Positions 35,180 to 52,627 of a DNA stretch of 64,000 bases are shown here, piece by piece. The stretch is from NCBI RefSeq assembly GCF_040938485.1, contig NW_027271267.1:434001-498000 (forward strand), read 5' to 3'. A program made the translations under genes and the position numbers. This stretch comes from Diadema antillarum (lineage: Eukaryota). Each line of letters begins with the position of its first letter. Position 1 is the first letter of the stretch. The notes under the pieces are model-generated. The model was given only the letters and a program-made list of their open reading frames with translations. It was not told the origin of the DNA and did no database searches.

Positions 35180-35378
35180 GCCGTGCGTTACTAATGTTGC
35201 ATGCATGCTCCATATCCATGCGCGTAACACGTGCATGCACGCACGCCGGTCAGTACAGTCGAGTCAGGTACGTATATTTGCGCTTGTTTTATTGCGCTGG
35301 TCTACATGGTATGGATGGCCCGGCTAGCTTAGCTCCTCTCTAACGTTAGCTCTAAATTTCATTGTGAAAAGTTTCAAA

Positions 35379-38300
35379 ATGATCCGGAAAGTGAAACCAA
35401 GACGGTCGCTCCCAGCTTCAAAAAATAGATCTAGATTGGCTGTTCATGCTAAACCAAGGACAAGGTTGAACTCATCTCAGCAGGACTCTAAGGAGGGCAA
35501 TCTTGGTCAAAAGAGAGCCCATTCACCGGAAGAGGACAAGAAAGAACTGCATCGTATCCATGAACGGTAATATAGTCCCCGTACACACATGACATGTGTC
35601 ACCTCTCCACTCTCGTGGACGAAAATGGAAAACTGTGTTGAAGTGAAACTGGGTGCCTTCGTCACTCAGGGCTCAAAAATTTAATCATTCAATTGTCTGT
35701 CTACTGCTCGTGCAGTGGTCTATCCGTTGCATTAACAGGTAGATCGTATTGAGACTTGACATCTCGAGACGGTAGGACTAGAATCTAGAGTAGGACTCGT
35801 ACTAGGCAATAGGGCCTAAGAAGAGTTGTGTACCAAGGCCACGGCAAGGCATAGCATCTACATTACAGTAGGAAGGGTCCTACTCCTACACCTACTAGGC
35901 TAGACTAGCGTACGTGTACGTACTACTACTATTACAACTTGGTAGTCTAACGTTACTCCAACAATCCAGTAATCACACTCGATACTAACACTTGACACTA
36001 GTCCCTTGACTTATCAAAATGAAATTTAACTATTTAAGGGCAAATAATAGTATTAAGCAGCTCCTTGCGACCTTGGTCATTTCAAAATTTAAAAGACCCC
36101 TAACATTAATGTTAACAATTTGTTAGACCTAACCGTTACCTCTGAGTCTAAAATCACTTTGAAAGTTTGGGATCTAACTTTGGTTTTCAAAAAAAGAAAG
36201 AAAAGAGAGAAAGAAAAAATGAACTCGACAAGTCCAATCAATGTACAAAATGAGGGCAGACCCATGCAGGCTCGGACCCCAGCCAGGGCAGGGGTGCATA
36301 GGACTAGGCAATACCCTCGCACTTAAGACATACAGTCTAATTAGAAGTAGAACGTCTAGTTAACGTTAGGGGTCTACATAACCCCGGCGCGGGGTGCTGT
36401 AACTAGTAACACGGTACGTGTTGGGATCGCTGGTGCGGTTAGATTTGGTTATTCATACAAAGAAGGGGGGAAAAAAAAGGAAAAAGAAAACCAAACCAAA
36501 ATGCAAATAATAGTCATATGTGACATTTGAGTGTTAGTTCATGCTAAACCAAGGACAAGGTTGAACTCATCTCAGCAGGACTCTAAGGAGGGCAATCTTG
36601 GTCAAAAGAGAGCCCATTCACCGGAAGAGGACAAGAAAGAACTGCATCGTATCCATGAACGGTAATATAGTCCCCGTACACACATGACATGTGTCACCTC
36701 TCCACTCTCGTGGACGAAAATGGAAAACTGTGTTGAAGTGAAACTGGGTGCCTTCGTCACTCAGGGCTCAAAAATTTAATCATTCAATTGTCTGTCTACT
36801 GCTCGTGCAGTGGTCTATCCGTTGCATTAACAGGTAGATCGTATTGAGACTTGACATCTCGAGACGGTAGGACTAGAATCTAGAGTAGGACTCGTACTAG
36901 GCAATAGGGCCTAAGAAGAGTTGTGTACCAAGGCCACTGCAAGGCATAGCATCTACATTACAGTAGGAAGGGTCCTACTCCTACACCTACTAGGCTAGAC
37001 TAGCGTACGTGTACGTACTACTACTATTACAACTTGGTAGTCTAACGTTACTCCAACAATCCAGTAATCACACTCGATACTAACACTTGACACTAGTCCC
37101 TTGACTTATCAAAATGAAATTTAACTATTTAAGGGCAAATAATAGTATTAAGCAGCTCCTTGCGACCTTGGTCATTTCAAAATTTAAAAGACCCCTAACA
37201 TTAATGTTAACAATTTGTTAGACCTAGCCGTTACCTCTGAGTCTAAAATCACTTTGAAAGTTTGGGATCTAACTTTGGTTTTCAAAAAAAGAAAGAAAAG
37301 AGAGAAAGAAAAAATGAACTCGACAAGTCCAATCAATGTACAAAATGAGGGCAGACCCATGCTCGGACCCCAGCCAGGGCAGGGGTGCATAGGACTAGGC
37401 AATACCCTCGCACTTAAGACATACAGTCTAATTAGAAGTAGAACGTCTAGTTAACGTTAGGGGTCTACATAACCCCGGCGCGGGGTGCTGTAACTAGTAA
37501 CACGGTACGTGTTGGGATCGCTGGTGCGGTTAGATTTGGTTATTCATACAAAGAAGGGGGGAAAAAAAAGGAAAAAGAAAACCAAACCAAAATGCAAATA
37601 ATAGTCGTATGTGACAGTTGAGTGTTAGTTACTGTCCCATGTTAATCAATTACAATCATTGTAATTTGTACAGTGGACTCCTGCTATTAACAAAGACCTT
37701 GTAACCAGCAGTTTTCTTTTGATATATTGAATTTCTTTATAACCGAACAAGTAAACAATAAAAAAGATTGAGCCAATAATGTTGTGGTCTGAATATTTTC
37801 TTTGTTGTAATCAGAATTTCGTTATGACAGGATTGCACTGTCTGTACCTTACACGATGGCAGACTTATCTGTATAGTGATGTAGTAGTATCTAATTGTAT
37901 TAGAAGACGTGAGTCCCATCAGAGTTGTGGCAACCTCTAGTAGGAGAGATGGACACCTTATTGACAAAGTTTTCAACCATGTCTATTGCCTTCATATATG
38001 TCAATGCCTTTAGTGTCTTCACCTTTCAGACAGAGACACCACAGCCTAAATGTAGCCATAAGGAAAATCATCTCCACAATGCCTTCTTGTGAACCCAATG
38101 AACCAGAAACCAAGGTAAATGCAAATTGACATGCATTTCCATTAATCTTTAACTTTACCAGAATTTGAATGCCTAGATAGGTTCTAGATAAATAGAGGGA
38201 AATTACATTTACTTGTAACAAGATTGTTTGATAACCTGATTATAAGAATTCCTTCTGGTCACCTTTTACCATTTAAATTCTAATATTATACTTAATGAAG

Positions 38301-41300
38301 AGCTTTGGTGCATGTTGTTTTTTTTTAATCTGTGTGGATGTGTTAGTATGTAATTTTGCATTCTTTTAACAAGAAGATGCATCCATTCAGTTGATGTATT
38401 TGTTACATCTACTTATTCAAAATGTACATTTTCTGCTGTCATAAAATCATTTTTATTGTTCAGTCATGTCTACTTTTAGAGCAACAACAACAACAACGTT
38501 GTCAAATACCATCCCCATCATAGACCACTGATATTCTCTCTATCTTCTTCCAGCACTATGTCTTGAGGAAGACAAGTGACTACATCCAGTTTTTGGAAGA
38601 CAAAATTTCAGAGCTGTGTGCTGCCATGCACATTGAGCCCCAGAACAGAGATAGAAATTTGTCGTTCAGTTCTCCCATCTACACCTGCATAGGTGAGTCT
38701 TCTATAAAGCAGCAGATATATATATATATATATTATTATTACCTGAATTACCTACGATGACGCCCAGTAAGTTGAAAACTTGTAGAGGGCCATTCAAAGG
38801 ATTTAATCCTGAGCCTGAGGAGATCCATGTGTTGTACTGTATCCATGGAATTATCAGTTAATGCAATCTGGATGAAATTTGTTATGCTTCTGCTTCCAGT
38901 GATCATTGAGCTTGGACTTGAAGCTATTCACAGATGTTGCCGCGACAGCATCTGCACAAAGGCTATTCCAAGTATTTACTACTCTCTGACTGAAAGACTT
39001 CAACCTTTTACTTGTTCGACACCTTCCTTTATACAACTTCAACTTGTGACCGCGAGTAACATGATCATTGATGACAAAGAGAACAGCTGGATCAAAGTCT
39101 TCCATACTATGCAAAATTTTGAACACTTGAATCATATCTGAATTTTCACGTCGATACTCTAGGGATGGAATCCCCCAAATGCTTGAGTCTCTCAGGATAT
39201 GACAACAATTTAACCTCTGATACCAACTTTGTTGCTCTCCTCTGAACTGATTCAAGCTTCTTTGCATCACTCTTTGAAAGTTCATTCCACACACAAGAGC
39301 AATATTCCAAGAGTGCATCTATTATTATAAGGGCTCGACACTATTTTTTCTGGTGGCCTGTTTGGACCACTAATGACTAAATGTATATAGATTACAAATT
39401 TTGGTGGCCCTAACCACCCCCCCCCCCCCAGAATTGGCCCAAAATAAAAGTATACATAGCAACCCATTTTGAATCTTAGTTTCCCAAATGGGTCACCAAG
39501 AGATAACCTTGTTGGACATTTGCAGTTCATGATGTTAAATAATGTATGATGTTAATAATTTTGGTCACATAAACATTGGATATCACTGTTATATTCAGGT
39601 ATTGAAAGTTCTAATGCCTAGTCAGATTAAAAATTAGTAATTTTGCAAATGTATTAATATCCGTTCAATCTTTCAATGCAGACACTTACAATCTATCATC
39701 AAATGTATCCATTTTACAGATGGAGTGCAAAAGGAAATTGCTGCCAATGTCCCTGTAAGCCTCAATGATTTGGAAGAGCTAATGAGCAATCTCAACTTTC
39801 GAATGACCAAGAGTAGAAGTTTCAGATCCAAGAGGAAATCGTGCAGGAACAAAAGGAGCACAGGTATGAAAAAAACTCAGACCTCTTGTCCCAGTGCAGA
39901 GGACGAAAACAAAATCTTGGATGAAGCGGATCATTTCTACCAGGAGGGGAAGGATTCACAGGAAGAAGTAGCAAAGGGAGAAAAGGGGGACTCACAAGAG
40001 AGTTTCCATGGTGATGCCTCTGGAAGCAGCATGATGTGCTCTGAGAGCCCAACAGACTTGGACTCTTCCGGTGTAAGCAACACGAACACTTCCTCATCTA
40101 GTAGCTGGGGCACGACATCTGTTGATGATGGGTTTGCCAGCGGCGGGAAGGCACAGGAGTCCACACAGGAGGATCGATGCAGCACCCATTCAAGCCAGGA
40201 GAAGGAAGAGACTCTCTCTGATCTTCTTGGGAGAGACATTGCCAGACTAAAAACAAAGTACATTCCCAGCAAAGAACAGGTTGATTCAGTGAACAAGCCT
40301 CACAGCAGTGGTATCACAGAGACCAGGCAGGATTGGGTGGCAGTTCTGGCAGGGGGTGTATCCAGCCTCCAAAAAGCATATCAAGGACATTCGCACAGCC
40401 TGGAATCAAGTTGTGGGGAAATCCCATTTCCTGCTACAAGGGGATGTAAGGCAAAACGCAAACAGCCAGAAAGTGGTGTGTTCTTGCCAATCTTACCATC
40501 ATCAAGCTACCAGTCACTGGAATTGAACCATAAGCTTGGTCTTCCTCATGGAACTCTTATACAGAATGACAAAACTTCTGGTCGTTCTGACAACATCGCA
40601 TCTGTCCAGTCCAGCCACATCGTCAACCCATCTCTCACACATCAGTCAAAGTCAAACCCAAGAACTGGCTTCAAGAAGAGGTCCTTGGCCACTGGTCGAA
40701 GCTGCAAAACTCGTGGTGATGCTGGTTCCAGCATGTCCTACACCAGCATCAATGTAAGCAATCAGGGGTTACGTTTCCAACCAGTCGAGCAAACTGTCGA
40801 CATTCCCCTTGATGTGGGACCAGATCCGCAGCTGTTGTCCTCCATCTATGGGCTTCAGTTCCCCACCAAGCGGACCTGGCTCAACGGCTACCAGCTCTTT
40901 ACAAAAGTCAACCAGAAGAGATTCAGAGAGTGAGTGTGGGAGACAGTCTATATCACTGTACAATCATCTAACATAGCACTGGTATTTTGGTTTGGAATCC
41001 AACTTGAATATTTGTTGGCATCTAGAAGGAGGGGGGATGGGCAAAATGTGTCAAACTTTCAAATTACTCAAAAAAAGATAACATCTATCAGATGGATTAC
41101 AGTGATACATGATTCAGCATAGTTGTTTCTATGACCTTGTGCTGTGTTCGTCAGCACCCATTTCTTAAAAGCAATGTTTTATAGTGAGTATGGGCATAAT
41201 GTGAATCACACAAATTCATGATGTCAGTGGTGCTCTGGAAAAAAAAGAATTGTAGTAAAACAACTCATCATTTCAGATTTTTGATAATCAAGAACATTAA

Positions 41301-42509
41301 AAAAAAAAATAATGGTCTTCTTATTTCAACACCTTATCTTACCTTATCCCTACAGTGGATGGCCTCACCTGAAAGACAAGGAAGTCGCCAAAGTGGTTAG
41401 TCAAGCTTGGCAACAGCTATCAGAACCTTACAGGAAACTCTACAGGTAACCAGCCATTCTTGGGCAATTTCTTTTCTTGTGTTGATTTTTTTTTATAGCT
41501 TTATTCATTACAGGGTTTGGTTGGGGTTTGATATCAATAGGAGAAGCCCAATCTGCCCACGAAATTACTGCCTGTTGTCAAGATGAGAGCCAAAGGGCAC
41601 TATAGTCTGCTTGGCCATACCATGGAATTGTCTAGTAAAGCTATTAAACTTTCTAGCGTCTCTGTCATTATTACATTTTTTTTTTCAAAATTATATTGCA
41701 GAGTAACTTGCAATATGGAATCTCCTGTCGATGCGACAGATGAGTAGGCAGACCAGTCATTTGCAGAGGTGGGTTCTCGTGTGAGAATGAAGTCCAATTC
41801 TTGATGCACATGATCTATGGGTGCTACACAGAAAGGACTCCAAAGAAGTTGAACTGCTTGTCTCCCTCTTTGACCAGATGGCTATTGCTCTGTTGGTTTC
41901 AAATGTCTCAGTGCCTTGGGTACACTGTTGCCTCCATAGAGCTCTGTAAACATACCCTTTACTTCAGCAAACATTAATGAACGGGAGCAGCTTATGAGCT
42001 AAAAGAGATTTGAGTGTTTGGTGATGGCCAATGTTGCTGAATGAGATGGTGTCTAATATTTCTGTCTGTTATTTGTCATTATCAACTGCTTTTTGCATAC
42101 ATATCATTTTTCAGTCACTTGTGCTACATGTTCATAAGCTTCCTTCTGACAGGCACTTTAACCACTTTTAGCAGTTTGAGCTATTAAAGGTTCTGAAATG
42201 TTTCAGCTTTTTATGCTTCAATTCATTTTCTCTGCATTTGAGTGTTAATTGTGATTGTAATCTTGGGCATTATACAAGTAGGCTTTGCGCAGATAACGAT
42301 TGCACATTTAATTCCCCCTGTCAACAATGACTCAACCATCCCTTTAAAGGACATATAATACAGTGGCATGTGATATCCTATGTGGAAATCATTTACTCTA
42401 TGTCCATATTCTGAAATAATGGTGACATTCTTCTCGCTTTCTTGTTCTCAGTCAAGGAGCCCGGGAATGGAACCGCTGGTACAAGCACCAAGTTGAAACT
42501 AAACATTGA
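35379..42509 (+). CDS. MEIOSIN: bHLH and HMG-box domain protein, MEIOSIN/BHMG1-like, 6 exons, 589 aa
   Basis: join(35379-35566, 38030-38114, 38554-38692, 39720-40929, 41356-41445, 42452-42509), 1770 nt, all GT-AG with matching phases. bHLH split over exons 1-3: KKELHRIHERQRHHSLNVAIRKIISTMPSCEPNEPETKHYVLRKTSDYIQFLEDKI. Long Ser/acidic linker in exon 4. HMG box split over exons 4-6: KRTWLNGYQLFTKVNQKRFRDGWPHLKDKEVAKVVSQAWQQLSEPYRKLYSQGAREWNRWYKHQV. This aligns without gaps to the BHMG1 HMG box as recalled (VNGFIMFCRMNRK...LWRVMT..ERRPYCTKARRFSRQHNRIV). The gene model is well supported; orthology is inferred from architecture. Confidence 0.75.
35442..37630 (+). repeat. Head-to-tail tandem duplication (about 1095 + 1091 bp) of the 3' part of exon 1 and proximal intron 1 of the bHLH-HMG gene
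   Basis: Copy 1 is 35442-36536 and copy 2 is 36537-37627, with GTT microhomology at the junctions. The copies differ by only a few substitutions and one 4-bp indel (CATGCAGGCTCGG vs CATGCTCGG). Confidence 0.97.
37669..37842. mobile_element. About 175-bp Tc1/mariner-type MITE, degenerate copy
   Basis: TACAGTGGACTCC left end and TTATGACAGGATTGCACTG right end. Confidence 0.65.
38720..39320 (-). mobile_element. 5'-truncated CR1/L2-clade LINE 3' end
   Basis: ORF 38854-39318 encodes the typical CR1 ORF2 C-terminus (LEYRR..DMIQVFKIL, TRGHKLKLYK, FSQRVVNTWNSL, SVNSFKSKLN). It is followed by a 3' UTR and a short-repeat tail (AGGTAATTCAGGTAATAATAAT). Confidence 0.85.
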
Positions 42510-43429
42510 GTGTGTTGACACTCCCTCCATACTAATAACCCACGTAACCAGAACACCATCGATCCAGCAAGGAGAGAATGGTTCACTGTTATGTTTTTTT
42601 GTTAAATGATAACGAGTAAAACAAGACAGGCAAATGATGTCATTTGGTGATTCTTCACTGTGAAAGGCAACATTTATTACTTTGATTATGCATATAAATT
42701 TTTTTTCTACTTTAATCCTTTCCTCTCTTTTTTTTTTTGAAATGTTTGTGCCAATTTGAAAGCATACAATAATTTTGGTCATTTTTTTTTCCTCCCCATT
42801 GAATCATCTATGTGAAATAGTTTAAAATCAGTTATAAAATACAGTTATGGCTACTGTCTTTTATTTTGTGACATTGCATGTGTTAAAGGGTCTCTTCTGC
42901 TTCATCAACAATGCAAATTGCTCTCTGCTCAATCTGCAACCCCAAAGTTGCTCCCGGTGTCAAATAACTGTTGTTGTCCTCTCCAGTACCAGGTATTAAA
43001 GCTCTCGGACAGTTTTTGCGTTTATATATGCTCGAGTGAAACACGTACATTGTATATGAAATGTCTCGCGCAGAATCTTATAGAAGATGCTCAAGGGACG
43101 ATGCAAAAAGTTTCAAATCACATGGAATAGCGAGTGTCAGTTTTAAGAAGACAAGGTTACCTAATGCATTCTTGAAGGAATACCACATGCAAGAACTCCT
43201 TTGTGAATTACTCTCATTGTACTTTATTGCCATTGCCGTGTTTTGCCTTTGAGACCCTTTCCATGGTTTCAGCCTACTTTTCGTTCAAGTAATGTATCTG
43301 GAATTTTCTCTCATTAAAATTTCTTTCTTAGAAAATTCCCTTATATCACAAGAGGAGAGCTCAAATGTTTTGCAGTTATTTTGAAATGATTATGAATTAT
43401 AATGTTTGGGCTCACCTTGTTAAATGGTG

Positions 43430-50324: not shown

Positions 50325-52627
50325 TCATCCACATCCGCACGGATCGCCGCACTGCTTCCTGTTCTGCCACCTCGTGCGCAAGTCCTCGGCGGAGAGTTCC
50401 GCCGAGACGTACATCGACGCGGAGCAGGCATTGTCGCAGTGCCACCGTGGGTCGTCGTGGTAACTCGGCTGGACGGCTGCCAGCCAGATGCCAAGGGAGA
50501 CGTCCTCACCCTGAAACCTGTGCAGGTGTCTAGGAGAGAAGGGGACATTGAAACTAATCTAAATGTTTGACCAACACCTGAATACTGTGCACATAAAAAA
50601 AAATAATAATAATAAATGAAGAATGATAATAAAATGATAATAAATAAATAAAATGAAAACATATTTTCTCTTCAATTTTGGAAAGATATTGCTATCTGGC
50701 CTGTCTACAGTGGGCAGTGCATCAAGCGTACCCTTCTTTACACAGAATAGAGATGGAGGGCTCAGAGTCTGAAAGATATTCATCTTACCAACAGCCCTTT
50801 CACAAAACAACAACAACTTGGCAAGAATAGCTAGTCTCCATGGCAATGTGGACTGGCAAAATCACTGCAAAGGATCAAAGGTCATATCTCCCTCCTAATG
50901 AATCATAGGATATCAAAGCAATCAAACGTTTCAGTCTCGGTAATGACCCCCCCGACCCCCGACCCGCAGCCAATGTGTCCAGACACAATTGTGTAGACCG
51001 ATATCAACATAAGACTGACTGAAAATATCACATCTCTCACATTCTGTCATGGAGAATTTCTAATTGTCCATTCAGAGTGGTAATAATATTACACAAATTC
51101 ATATTGAGTCATTAGTCTGAGTAAAACCATTCCAAGGCATATTACGAAGGAGGAGAAGGGGGAAAAAATACACCAATGCTACAGGCAATTGAAATGTTGT
51201 TTCGGCTATGTACTGTATGCTTTTGTGAAAAGGAATGTTTTTAGGGTAGCTGTGAAAGAACCAAATGTTTCCAAAGAATGGATATGGCTGGTACAAATGC
51301 AACTGGGAAAAAATGAAAGCATACCTGGAGTTGCTGGCAATCCACCTGACTAGGTCCATGCTCATCAGACTGCCCGACCCACAGGCAAAGGAGGGGTACA
51401 CTGGGGATTGGTAGTCGTGCTCCGCCCACTTCCCATGGTGCTCCACAGTCCAGCCAGTGCGGAACTGACCCCACCACAGTTTGGGTTCAGGGAACTTGTT
51501 CATGGTGAAATGCTAGGATTAAAATATCATCATTTTAAATGGGTGGGATTATTTTCTACTCTTTTCACCGGTACAAGTTTGTCATAAATTGGTTAAATTG
51601 ATTCATGAAATGCAAACTTCCCACGTTCCTGAATACAAAGTAAACACTCAAAACTTGCCCCGTCATATGATATCAACTTTCAATCAATTTTGCCCAAATC
51701 TTGTCAAGTGTATTGTTTTCCTGTACTATGTACTGACAGTGATGCAAGACAACATACGACTCATTTGTTGGGTAAGAAGTTACATTTTAAATTTTGACCC
51801 TTAACCCTTGAGGACGAGTCCCGAGTATACTCAAGCAGGTGTCTATTGGAAATGTGTGTTGTAGCAAAATCAGCCCGTCCTCAACGGGTTAATGTTGACC
51901 TTTATCTGTTTTAGTACTTTTAGACTTCATATAGATATCTTCGAATTACCACAACCAATACCAGTATATGAAAAATGTCAGTAAAGGTTTTAAAGGACAT
52001 GAAAACATAAGATGGCATGAGACATCATCCAAACATGGAATATATCTTAATCATTAAAGAAAGAAATTGCTAAGGTGTGTATCTACATACCTGCATAATG
52101 TGATCAATGTTCATGAAGACATCGTCATCCGTCTTGATGGCATATTCTATATGGTTTAATTGCACCAGCCTGCATTTACGAAAAACCAAGACATAAGTGA
52201 CTGTGCATCACAAAACTACTAATAAAAAGTCACATGCCCTGATTTTTATTTTATTTTGTGTGTGTGTGTGAGGACTCAAGCAGGATAAGTGAAATGTGGA
52301 AACCTAGTCACTCTTAAGTTTTTCATATTTTCTAAAAGACCATTTCTTCTACATTTTTTAAAGTGTGGGATCATAAAACAAATAGGAAACTTTATTTTTC
52401 AGCAGTTTTTCTAAAACACTTTCTTTTTATACAATACTGTGATTAGGTATGTCTTAGAGTCCCCTTTTAATTTCTAAAAAAAAAAAAAAACAAAACAACC
52501 TTTACACACTTCAACTCTAAACTTTTGAGTTGGTGTTAGTCATGGATAAAATGGTTCGATAGAGGATGCACACATTCAGCTTCATGAGATAATCTCTTCA
52601 TTGTTCTTTAATAGTTTTATATCCCAT

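Follow-up and report, generated by a model that had tools for sequence, protein, structure and literature searches.

In the sea urchin Diadema antillarum, the locus holds a genuine and conserved protein-coding gene that combines an N-terminal bHLH with a C-terminal HMG box and belongs to an undescribed single-copy family that is widespread in invertebrates. The two-domain bHLH-HMG gene dates to the bilaterian ancestor, the last one that deuterostomes and protostomes share, because the family spans both groups and five intron positions and phases agree between representatives of five phyla. We consider that the family is most likely the invertebrate counterpart, as orthologue or pro-orthologue, of vertebrate MEIOSIN/BHMG1, and a common ancestral gene for the family and MEIOSIN is likely.

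Gene structure and domains

In the window, the whole 64,000-nucleotide stretch of DNA that was analysed, the gene comprises six plus-strand exons spanning 35379-42509. All borders are GT-AG and the phases are consistent, yielding a 1770-nt open reading frame that encodes 589 amino acids plus a stop. The first-pass annotation, made from the sequence alone, had claimed six phase-consistent exons in an apparently non-vertebrate genome, with both domains split by introns; its start and stop coordinates agree exactly, the source is a sea urchin, and the bHLH is indeed spread over exons 1-3 and the HMG box over exons 4-6.

Exon 1 (35379..35566) contributes the start codon, a basic N-terminus and the bHLH basic region, and ends in phase 2 within the invariant Arg codon of the E-[R]-x-R-H motif. 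Helix 1 and the loop of the bHLH are encoded by the 85-nt exon 2 (38030..38114), which ends in phase 0 after E-T-K, while exon 3 (38554..38692; phase 1 end) supplies helix 2 and ~20 residues beyond. The 1210-nt exon 4 (39720..40929; phase 2 end) encodes a Ser-rich linker that is predicted to be disordered and, from ~40868, the first part of the HMG box (N-terminal strand and helix 1). The box continues on the 90-nt exon 5 (41356..41445; phase 2 end) with helix 2 and the beginning of helix 3, the remainder of which is encoded, together with the stop codon, by exon 6 (42452..42509). On the same strand, an alternative last exon (41702..41747) encodes a C-terminus like that of D. setosum isoform X2, P0002; the isoform that uses this exon has 585 amino acids and a shortened HMG helix 3. 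Compared with the D. setosum protein, identity is 98% in each of the two domains and 92% over the linker.

The NCBI prediction for D. antillarum, P0001 ("uncharacterized"), corresponds to the six-exon model save for 36 additional residues, which come from a duplicated exon fragment. A 1.09-kb tandem duplication (first copy, 35442-36536; second copy on the plus strand, 36537..37630, 99.27% identical to the first) repeats the final 125 nt of exon 1 together with intron sequence; from the second copy, the NCBI model includes 36554-36661 as a further exon segment of 108 nt that keeps the frame. Pfam searches of ORF fragments from the adjoining genes gave no match, leaving these neighbours without names. 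A scan of the promoter vicinity revealed no retinoic-acid response elements upstream of exon 1, the direct-repeat hits in the window belonging to a tandem array at a distance of 24 kb.

Using Pfam on P0001, we found that HLH (24.4 bits, cut-off 20.7) and HMG_box_2 (28.5 bits, cut-off 22.4) both exceed their thresholds, with HMG_box scoring slightly below its own (24.0 bits, cut-off 25.4). AlphaFold2 generated a helix-loop-helix for the bHLH region and a three-helix HMG fold for the box, each with a pLDDT of 88; the Atlas pLDDT for the whole protein was 0.44. In the 589-residue protein the bHLH occupies residues 54-118 and the HMG box residues 521-589, separated by a linker of ~400 residues, which bears out the domain layout that had been proposed. 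The linker had also been described as rich in Ser and acidic residues. The first part holds (S, 16.7%) and the second does not: D+E (12.3%) is close to K+R (11.7%), and the linker is therefore not net acidic.

A two-domain family across Bilateria

We searched 1.84 billion representative proteins with the Diadema protein using phmmer (E ≤ 0.001). The 34 matches were all invertebrate proteins, most aligning in two stretches, and those with names came from echinoids, asteroids, ophiuroids, crinoids, holothuroids, hemichordates, molluscs, Lingula, Owenia and Priapulus. The bHLH-HMG family thus covers every one of the five echinoderm classes as well as hemichordates and molluscs, together with one brachiopod, one annelid and one priapulid. 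Among 24 aligned members, every one has the HMG box and 23 have the HLH, the bHLH being the best-conserved portion across phyla. Three word-indexed searches (with exon 4, with a 24-sequence family profile, which was swamped by low-complexity words, and with the Lingula HMG region) likewise returned invertebrate proteins only.

In the family tree, Ambulacraria and protostomes separate with 100/100 support, with one copy per species. The divergence between the two groups amounts to ~3.7 substitutions per site, marking a fast-evolving family, and urchin and mollusc HMG boxes are only ~20% identical. Sea urchin, acorn worm, oyster, brachiopod and priapulid have five intron positions in common, with identical phases, in or adjoining both domains. 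These are a phase-2 intron in the Arg codon of the basic region, a phase-0 intron that closes an exon of ~85 nt behind the loop, a phase-1 intron ~45 codons further on and, in the HMG box, two phase-2 introns ~90 nt apart. Counterparts of exon 2 with equal length and borders are present in Ptychodera and Magallana, and the 90-nt exon 5 is kept in Ptychodera, Magallana and Lingula.

Existing labels for family members vary: the Argonauta member was named BHMG1-1 by the record submitters, and those of Aplysia and Lottia carry the UniRef label 'Sex-determining region Y protein'. We found no paper describing an invertebrate MEIOSIN orthologue, nor any retrieved by the gene or protein accessions of family members; a sea anemone preprint includes 'Meiosin' among listed meiotic genes, without characterization. 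MEIOSIN orthologues have been described in vertebrates only and were traced down to hagfish, with more distant species outside that analysis (Shimada et al. 2026, PMC13637641).

Proposed relationship to MEIOSIN and alternative explanations

MEIOSIN/BHMG1 resembles the Diadema protein in having an N-terminal bHLH, a disordered linker of ~400 residues and a C-terminal HMG box. Mouse MEIOSIN (A0A5K7RLP0) carries its bHLH at ~10-70 and its HMG box at ~484-534 of 589 residues, and both domain order and spacing agree, in line with the MEIOSIN-like architecture that had been read from the Diadema sequence. Mouse and Diadema proteins have the same length (589 residues each), human MEIOSIN (C9JSJ3) having 638. 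The two differ in that ~45 residues follow the mouse HMG box, whereas the Diadema box lies at the extreme C-terminus, and they show no significant pairwise sequence similarity.

In a whole-protein language-model search (Atlas), 'meiosis initiator protein' ranked third with a score of 0.76, ahead of STRA8 clusters at 0.73, making MEIOSIN and then STRA8 the closest named vertebrate/chordate families. Among the Atlas clusters listed, HLH and HMG_box occur together only in the MEIOSIN cluster and in a mollusc cluster. The MEIOSIN score falls short of 0.9, the line set by the tool itself, and may be due to architecture alone. Atlas searches with each domain separately recovered generic HMG or bHLH clusters and singled out neither MEIOSIN nor another family.

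Foldseek with the HMG model against SwissProt ranked mouse and human MEIOSIN at 14-15 (23% identity, E 0.035), aligning 70 HMG residues of Diadema to mouse residues 475-544, with scores level with those of NHP6, HMGXB3, HBP1 and SOX10. A gapless alignment of the box to that of BHMG1, reported by the first-pass annotation, is compatible with this result; its specificity is not borne out, given 23% identity and many other boxes that match equally well. In the corresponding bHLH search, TAL, MYC and Twist came first, and neither MEIOSIN nor STRA8 was among the top 30. Profile searches of the structure database revealed no special affinity for either domain, the boxes of HMGB1, SOX18, SOX30 and HBP1 scoring about equally, as did MAX, MYC and USF for the bHLH. 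Against solved structures, the Diadema box alone matched TFAM best (27 bits), with SOX9 at 23 bits. The proposed MEIOSIN/BHMG1-like identity is thus partly supported, by layout and Atlas rank, and not by phmmer similarity or by specificity of the HMG fold.

These generic fold and profile matches, together with a phmmer search that found no vertebrate protein at E ≤ 0.001, are the observations in favour of a convergent architecture. According to this alternative, an ancient invertebrate bHLH-HMG family is unrelated by descent to MEIOSIN, vertebrates lost the family or changed it beyond recognition, and MEIOSIN joined its two domains independently; the function could then be anything that a dual DNA-binding factor does. 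We regard this as possible but doubtful. A bHLH and an HMG box very rarely occur within the same protein, the order and the ~400-residue spacing of the domains agree with mouse MEIOSIN, and whole-protein features put MEIOSIN and STRA8 as the closest named chordate clusters. Moreover, in a family evolving fast enough for urchin and mollusc boxes to differ as they do, failure to detect the vertebrate protein is expected even under orthology.

SOX/SRY proteins, like the family, have one HMG box in which the Asn and aromatic residues are conserved, but they lack a bHLH. The protostome boxes are SOX-like, and the family profile scores 47-49 bits on the structures of SOX2, SOX17, SOX18 and SOX30; with the UniRef labels of the Aplysia and Lottia members, this could suggest a divergent SOX-type gene (for example, SoxH/Sox30-like) with a spurious HLH match. 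Such an origin is very improbable, since the HLH stands above the Pfam cut-off in Diadema, recurs in nearly all aligned members and is the part that varies least across phyla, while the Diadema box reaches only 16-23 bits on SOX structures. The family's box motif is W-x-N-G-[YF]; that of SOX is P-M-N-A-F. We also considered echinoderm SoxH as an identity for the gene and rejected it: the published SoxH proteins are different sequences without the family's box motif. The published set of echinoderm SOX genes does not include the Diadema gene.

Regarding transcripts, a contig from X1, an unlabelled RNA-type run of a Diadema relative, joins the end of exon 1 to the start of exon 2. This was the only junction found spliced, and no D. 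antillarum reads or contigs span all exons. An intron-free oyster contig of 2349 nt contains both domains in one ORF, the genomic span of the gene being 15 kb. That the bHLH and HMG exons form two adjoining genes never joined in one transcript, as this single junction from a relative would still allow, is scarcely credible in view of the oyster contig, the independent prediction of the two-domain arrangement in 24 species (with the single missing HLH noted above) and exon 4, which connects post-bHLH sequence with the HMG box in one open frame. Runs X2-X4 are DNA of a related species, because their contigs continue through introns, and are uninformative on transcription or on the 1.09-kb duplication. 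We found no data on tissue expression for members of the family.

Putative function and a possible origin of meiotic entry

With two DNA-binding modules on either side of a long disordered Ser-rich linker, the product is predicted to be a nuclear transcription factor. The bHLH would provide dimerization and E-box-type contacts, and the HMG box would bind and bend the minor groove. The protein may act as a homodimer or with another bHLH partner, because STRA8 is not known outside vertebrates. Binding of promoters by both domains could activate a germline programme, possibly that of meiotic entry.

STRA8 itself resembles the Diadema protein in having an N-terminal bHLH followed by a long low-complexity region, but, unlike the family, it lacks a canonical HMG box; an HMG-like domain has been reported (Shimada et al. 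2026, PMC13637641). Its clusters stand at ranks 5, 6 and 12 of the Atlas neighbours, and all the STRA8 clusters among those neighbours are chordate. The Pfam bHLH_STRA8 model (PF23175) matched none of the family members checked (Diadema and the 24 aligned).

A bolder and, in our judgement, unlikely proposition is that MEIOSIN and STRA8 both descend from the bilaterian bHLH-HMG gene as their single pro-orthologue. A homodimer of this factor would already have brought germ cells into meiosis before there were vertebrates, and a duplication in the vertebrate stem would have produced the MEIOSIN-STRA8 heterodimer. If so, the meiotic-entry switch would originate at the base of Bilateria, which could be tested in sea urchins, sea stars and oysters.

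The bHLH-HMG family may bear on the age of the MEIOSIN-STRA8 axis. Should the family be the counterpart of MEIOSIN, as we favour, tractable marine models would make it possible to test how meiosis begins in animals that have no STRA8, and whether an HMG-based core is ancestral.

Finally, the five conserved intron positions offer a simple structural test of orthology that is independent of the fast-evolving protein sequence. In the mouse, the guides used for a delta-bHLH allele target the exon 2 donor and exon 4, indicating that the bHLH of mouse MEIOSIN spans exon borders too; by a weak reading of the repair oligo, mouse exon 2 ends in phase 2.

Exon structure and coding potential of the two-domain gene

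We reconstructed the Diadema gene by reading the sequence at 35300–42600 and splicing the exons by script. Six exons on the forward strand (35379–35566, 38030–38114, 38554–38692, 39720–40929, 41356–41445 and 42452–42509), all with GT-AG borders, yielded a 1,770-nt frame encoding 589 residues, exactly matching the start and stop coordinates assigned in the first-pass annotation. Both the bHLH domain and the HMG box are interrupted by introns, as had also been proposed; each contains two, so that no single ORF contains either domain whole. The linker, previously described as rich in both serine and acidic residues, is indeed Ser-rich (16.7%), but its acidic (12.3%) and basic (11.7%) residues are balanced.

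Using exon 4 as a query, we identified P0001, a 625-aa Diadema antillarum protein recorded by NCBI as ‘uncharacterized protein’ (100% identical), and P0002, isoform X2 of a D. setosum protein (87% identical). The genome, which had been judged non-vertebrate, is therefore that of a sea urchin. The proteins of the two Diadema species share 98% identity in both domains and 92% in the linker, while the corresponding values between Diadema and Lytechinus are 75% (bHLH), 42–47% (HMG box) and 31% (linker). An alternative last exon (41702–41747), conserved with D. setosum, reproduces the C-terminus of isoform X2; in the predicted 585-aa isoform, HMG helix 3 is cut short and the last third of the box is missing.

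P0001 corresponds to the 589-aa model plus 36 residues, which originate in duplicated sequence. The assembly contains a 1.09-kb tandem duplication (35442–36536 and 36537–37630; 99.27% identical), the copies of which differ by 4 mismatches and one 4-bp gap and cover 125 nt at the 3′ end of exon 1 together with 970 nt of intron 1. The NCBI model includes 36554–36661 as an extra exon (108 nt, in frame) through a weak acceptor, doubling the 36 residues immediately ahead of helix 1; D. setosum lacks this piece. Because it keeps the frame, the piece need not act as a poison exon. The duplication may be genuine or may have arisen in assembly.

Both domains scored above the Pfam thresholds (HLH, 24.4 bits against a cut-off of 20.7; HMG_box_2, 28.5 bits against 22.4). 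AlphaFold2 models generated from family alignments showed a three-helix HMG fold for the HMG box (pLDDT 87.9) and a helix-loop-helix for the bHLH (pLDDT 88.3). Within the family's bHLH, the basic region and helix 1 carry invariant H, E, R, R, H and N, the loop an invariant P, and helix 2 invariant Y and L; in the HMG box, W, N, G, P, W, Y and A are invariant or nearly so. The conserved Glu, with the Arg residues flanking it, corresponds to the residues that contact an E-box in bHLH–DNA complexes such as MAX, and by analogy with such complexes the Diadema protein is predicted to bind DNA.

A bilaterian bHLH-HMG family

Searching 1.84 billion representative proteins with P0001 (phmmer) returned 34 matches, most of them in two stretches and most 430–1,050 aa long. 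Their sources include echinoderms (echinoids, one asteroid, one ophiuroid, two crinoids and two holothuroids), the hemichordates Saccoglossus and Ptychodera, and protostomes (the annelid Owenia, the brachiopod Lingula, many molluscs and the priapulid Priapulus). All records are ‘uncharacterized’ or auto-named except one from Argonauta, which its submitter named ‘basic helix-loop-helix and HMG box domain-containing 1-1’. Among 24 aligned members, Pfam detected the HMG box in all and HLH in 23, with none matching bHLH_STRA8. The two-domain tree, with a single copy per species and long branches, separated Ambulacraria from protostomes at 100/100. The Diadema gene is confirmed as real and belongs to a bilaterian bHLH-HMG family that has not been described before.

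The two domains probably also occur on one transcript. In oyster, a 2,349-nt contig found in public sequencing data has an unbroken frame for a 590-aa protein that includes both domains; the genomic gene comprises 13 exons across 15 kb. For Diadema, a contig from an ‘RNA?’-labelled run of a relative ~94% identical (X1) passes from the end of exon 1 straight into the opening 29 bases of exon 2; runs X2–X4 are DNA from a related species.

Mapping proteins onto genomic loci of sea urchin, acorn worm, oyster, brachiopod and priapulid revealed five common intron positions with identical phases: within the basic-region Arg codon (phase 2); after the bHLH loop, ending an exon of 82–88 nt (phase 0); ~45 codons further on (phase 1); after HMG helix 1 (phase 2); and 90–93 nt past that (phase 2). 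On this evidence, the gene already carried both domains at the base of Bilateria. The exon encoding bHLH helix 1 and the loop is 85 nt in Diadema and 82–88 nt across the loci compared (L004–L007 and the window), and the mid-HMG-box exon measures 90 nt, or 93 nt in Priapulus; neither has changed much in size between priapulid and sea urchin. Linker introns were gained or lost often, with one linker exon in Diadema versus about eight in oyster.

Possible relationship to MEIOSIN

The proposed MEIOSIN-like layout was borne out: the Diadema protein and mouse MEIOSIN, each of 589 aa, share the same bHLH-to-HMG order. In mouse deletion constructs, loss of residues 10–70 removes the bHLH and loss of 484–534 the HMG box; Foldseek placed the box at 475–544 in mouse and 531–600 of 638 aa in human MEIOSIN. 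In the ESM Atlas, the whole Diadema protein lay closest to the cluster of the mollusc family (0.84), followed by a chordate HMG-only cluster and ‘meiosis initiator protein’ (both 0.76) and then by several STRA8 clusters (0.73–0.62).

Other results count against the MEIOSIN reading. Exhaustive phmmer with P0001 against the 1.84 billion representatives found no vertebrate protein at E ≤ 0.001. In SwissProt, Foldseek with the HMG model ranked MEIOSIN 14–15 (23% identity, E = 0.035), among NHP6, HMGXB3, HBP1, UBF-like and SOX10; the bHLH model matched TAL, N-MYC and Twist best. Atlas queries with single domains returned generic neighbours, and profiles searched against solved structures found no privileged partner for either domain. 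Weak vertebrate similarity is, however, expected whether or not the genes are orthologous, because urchin and mollusc HMG boxes within the family are themselves only ~20% identical. On the basis of architecture, parsimony and language-model proximity, we consider relationship to MEIOSIN the best available reading and moderately probable.

Shimada et al. 2026 (PMC13637641) traced MEIOSIN to hagfish, stating that their analysis did not extend to more distant species. ‘Meiosin’ is named, though not characterized, in a sea anemone preprint's list of meiotic genes. The Diadema gene is absent from an echinoderm SOX survey, and a literature search by accession found no paper citing any family member.

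Other features of the window

Two intronic segments (37338–37937 and 38738–39337) are high-copy repeats, as their contig depth runs into the thousands in DNA runs from the related species. An ORF at 38854–39318 (−) has no Pfam match; it may resemble the C-terminal end of a non-LTR retrotransposon protein. We take the upstream ORF fragments (2121–10582, +) to resemble a SCY1-like pseudokinase and a downstream fragment (51099–51503, −) a beta-1,3-galactosyltransferase; neither has a Pfam match. Finally, 11152–11995 contains two 157-bp tandem arrays dense in AGGTCA direct repeats with DR1, DR4 and DR5 spacings, accounting for 10 of the 13 direct-repeat matches in the window (0.43 expected from shuffles). 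These arrays resemble clustered nuclear-receptor half-sites but may be no more than a satellite.
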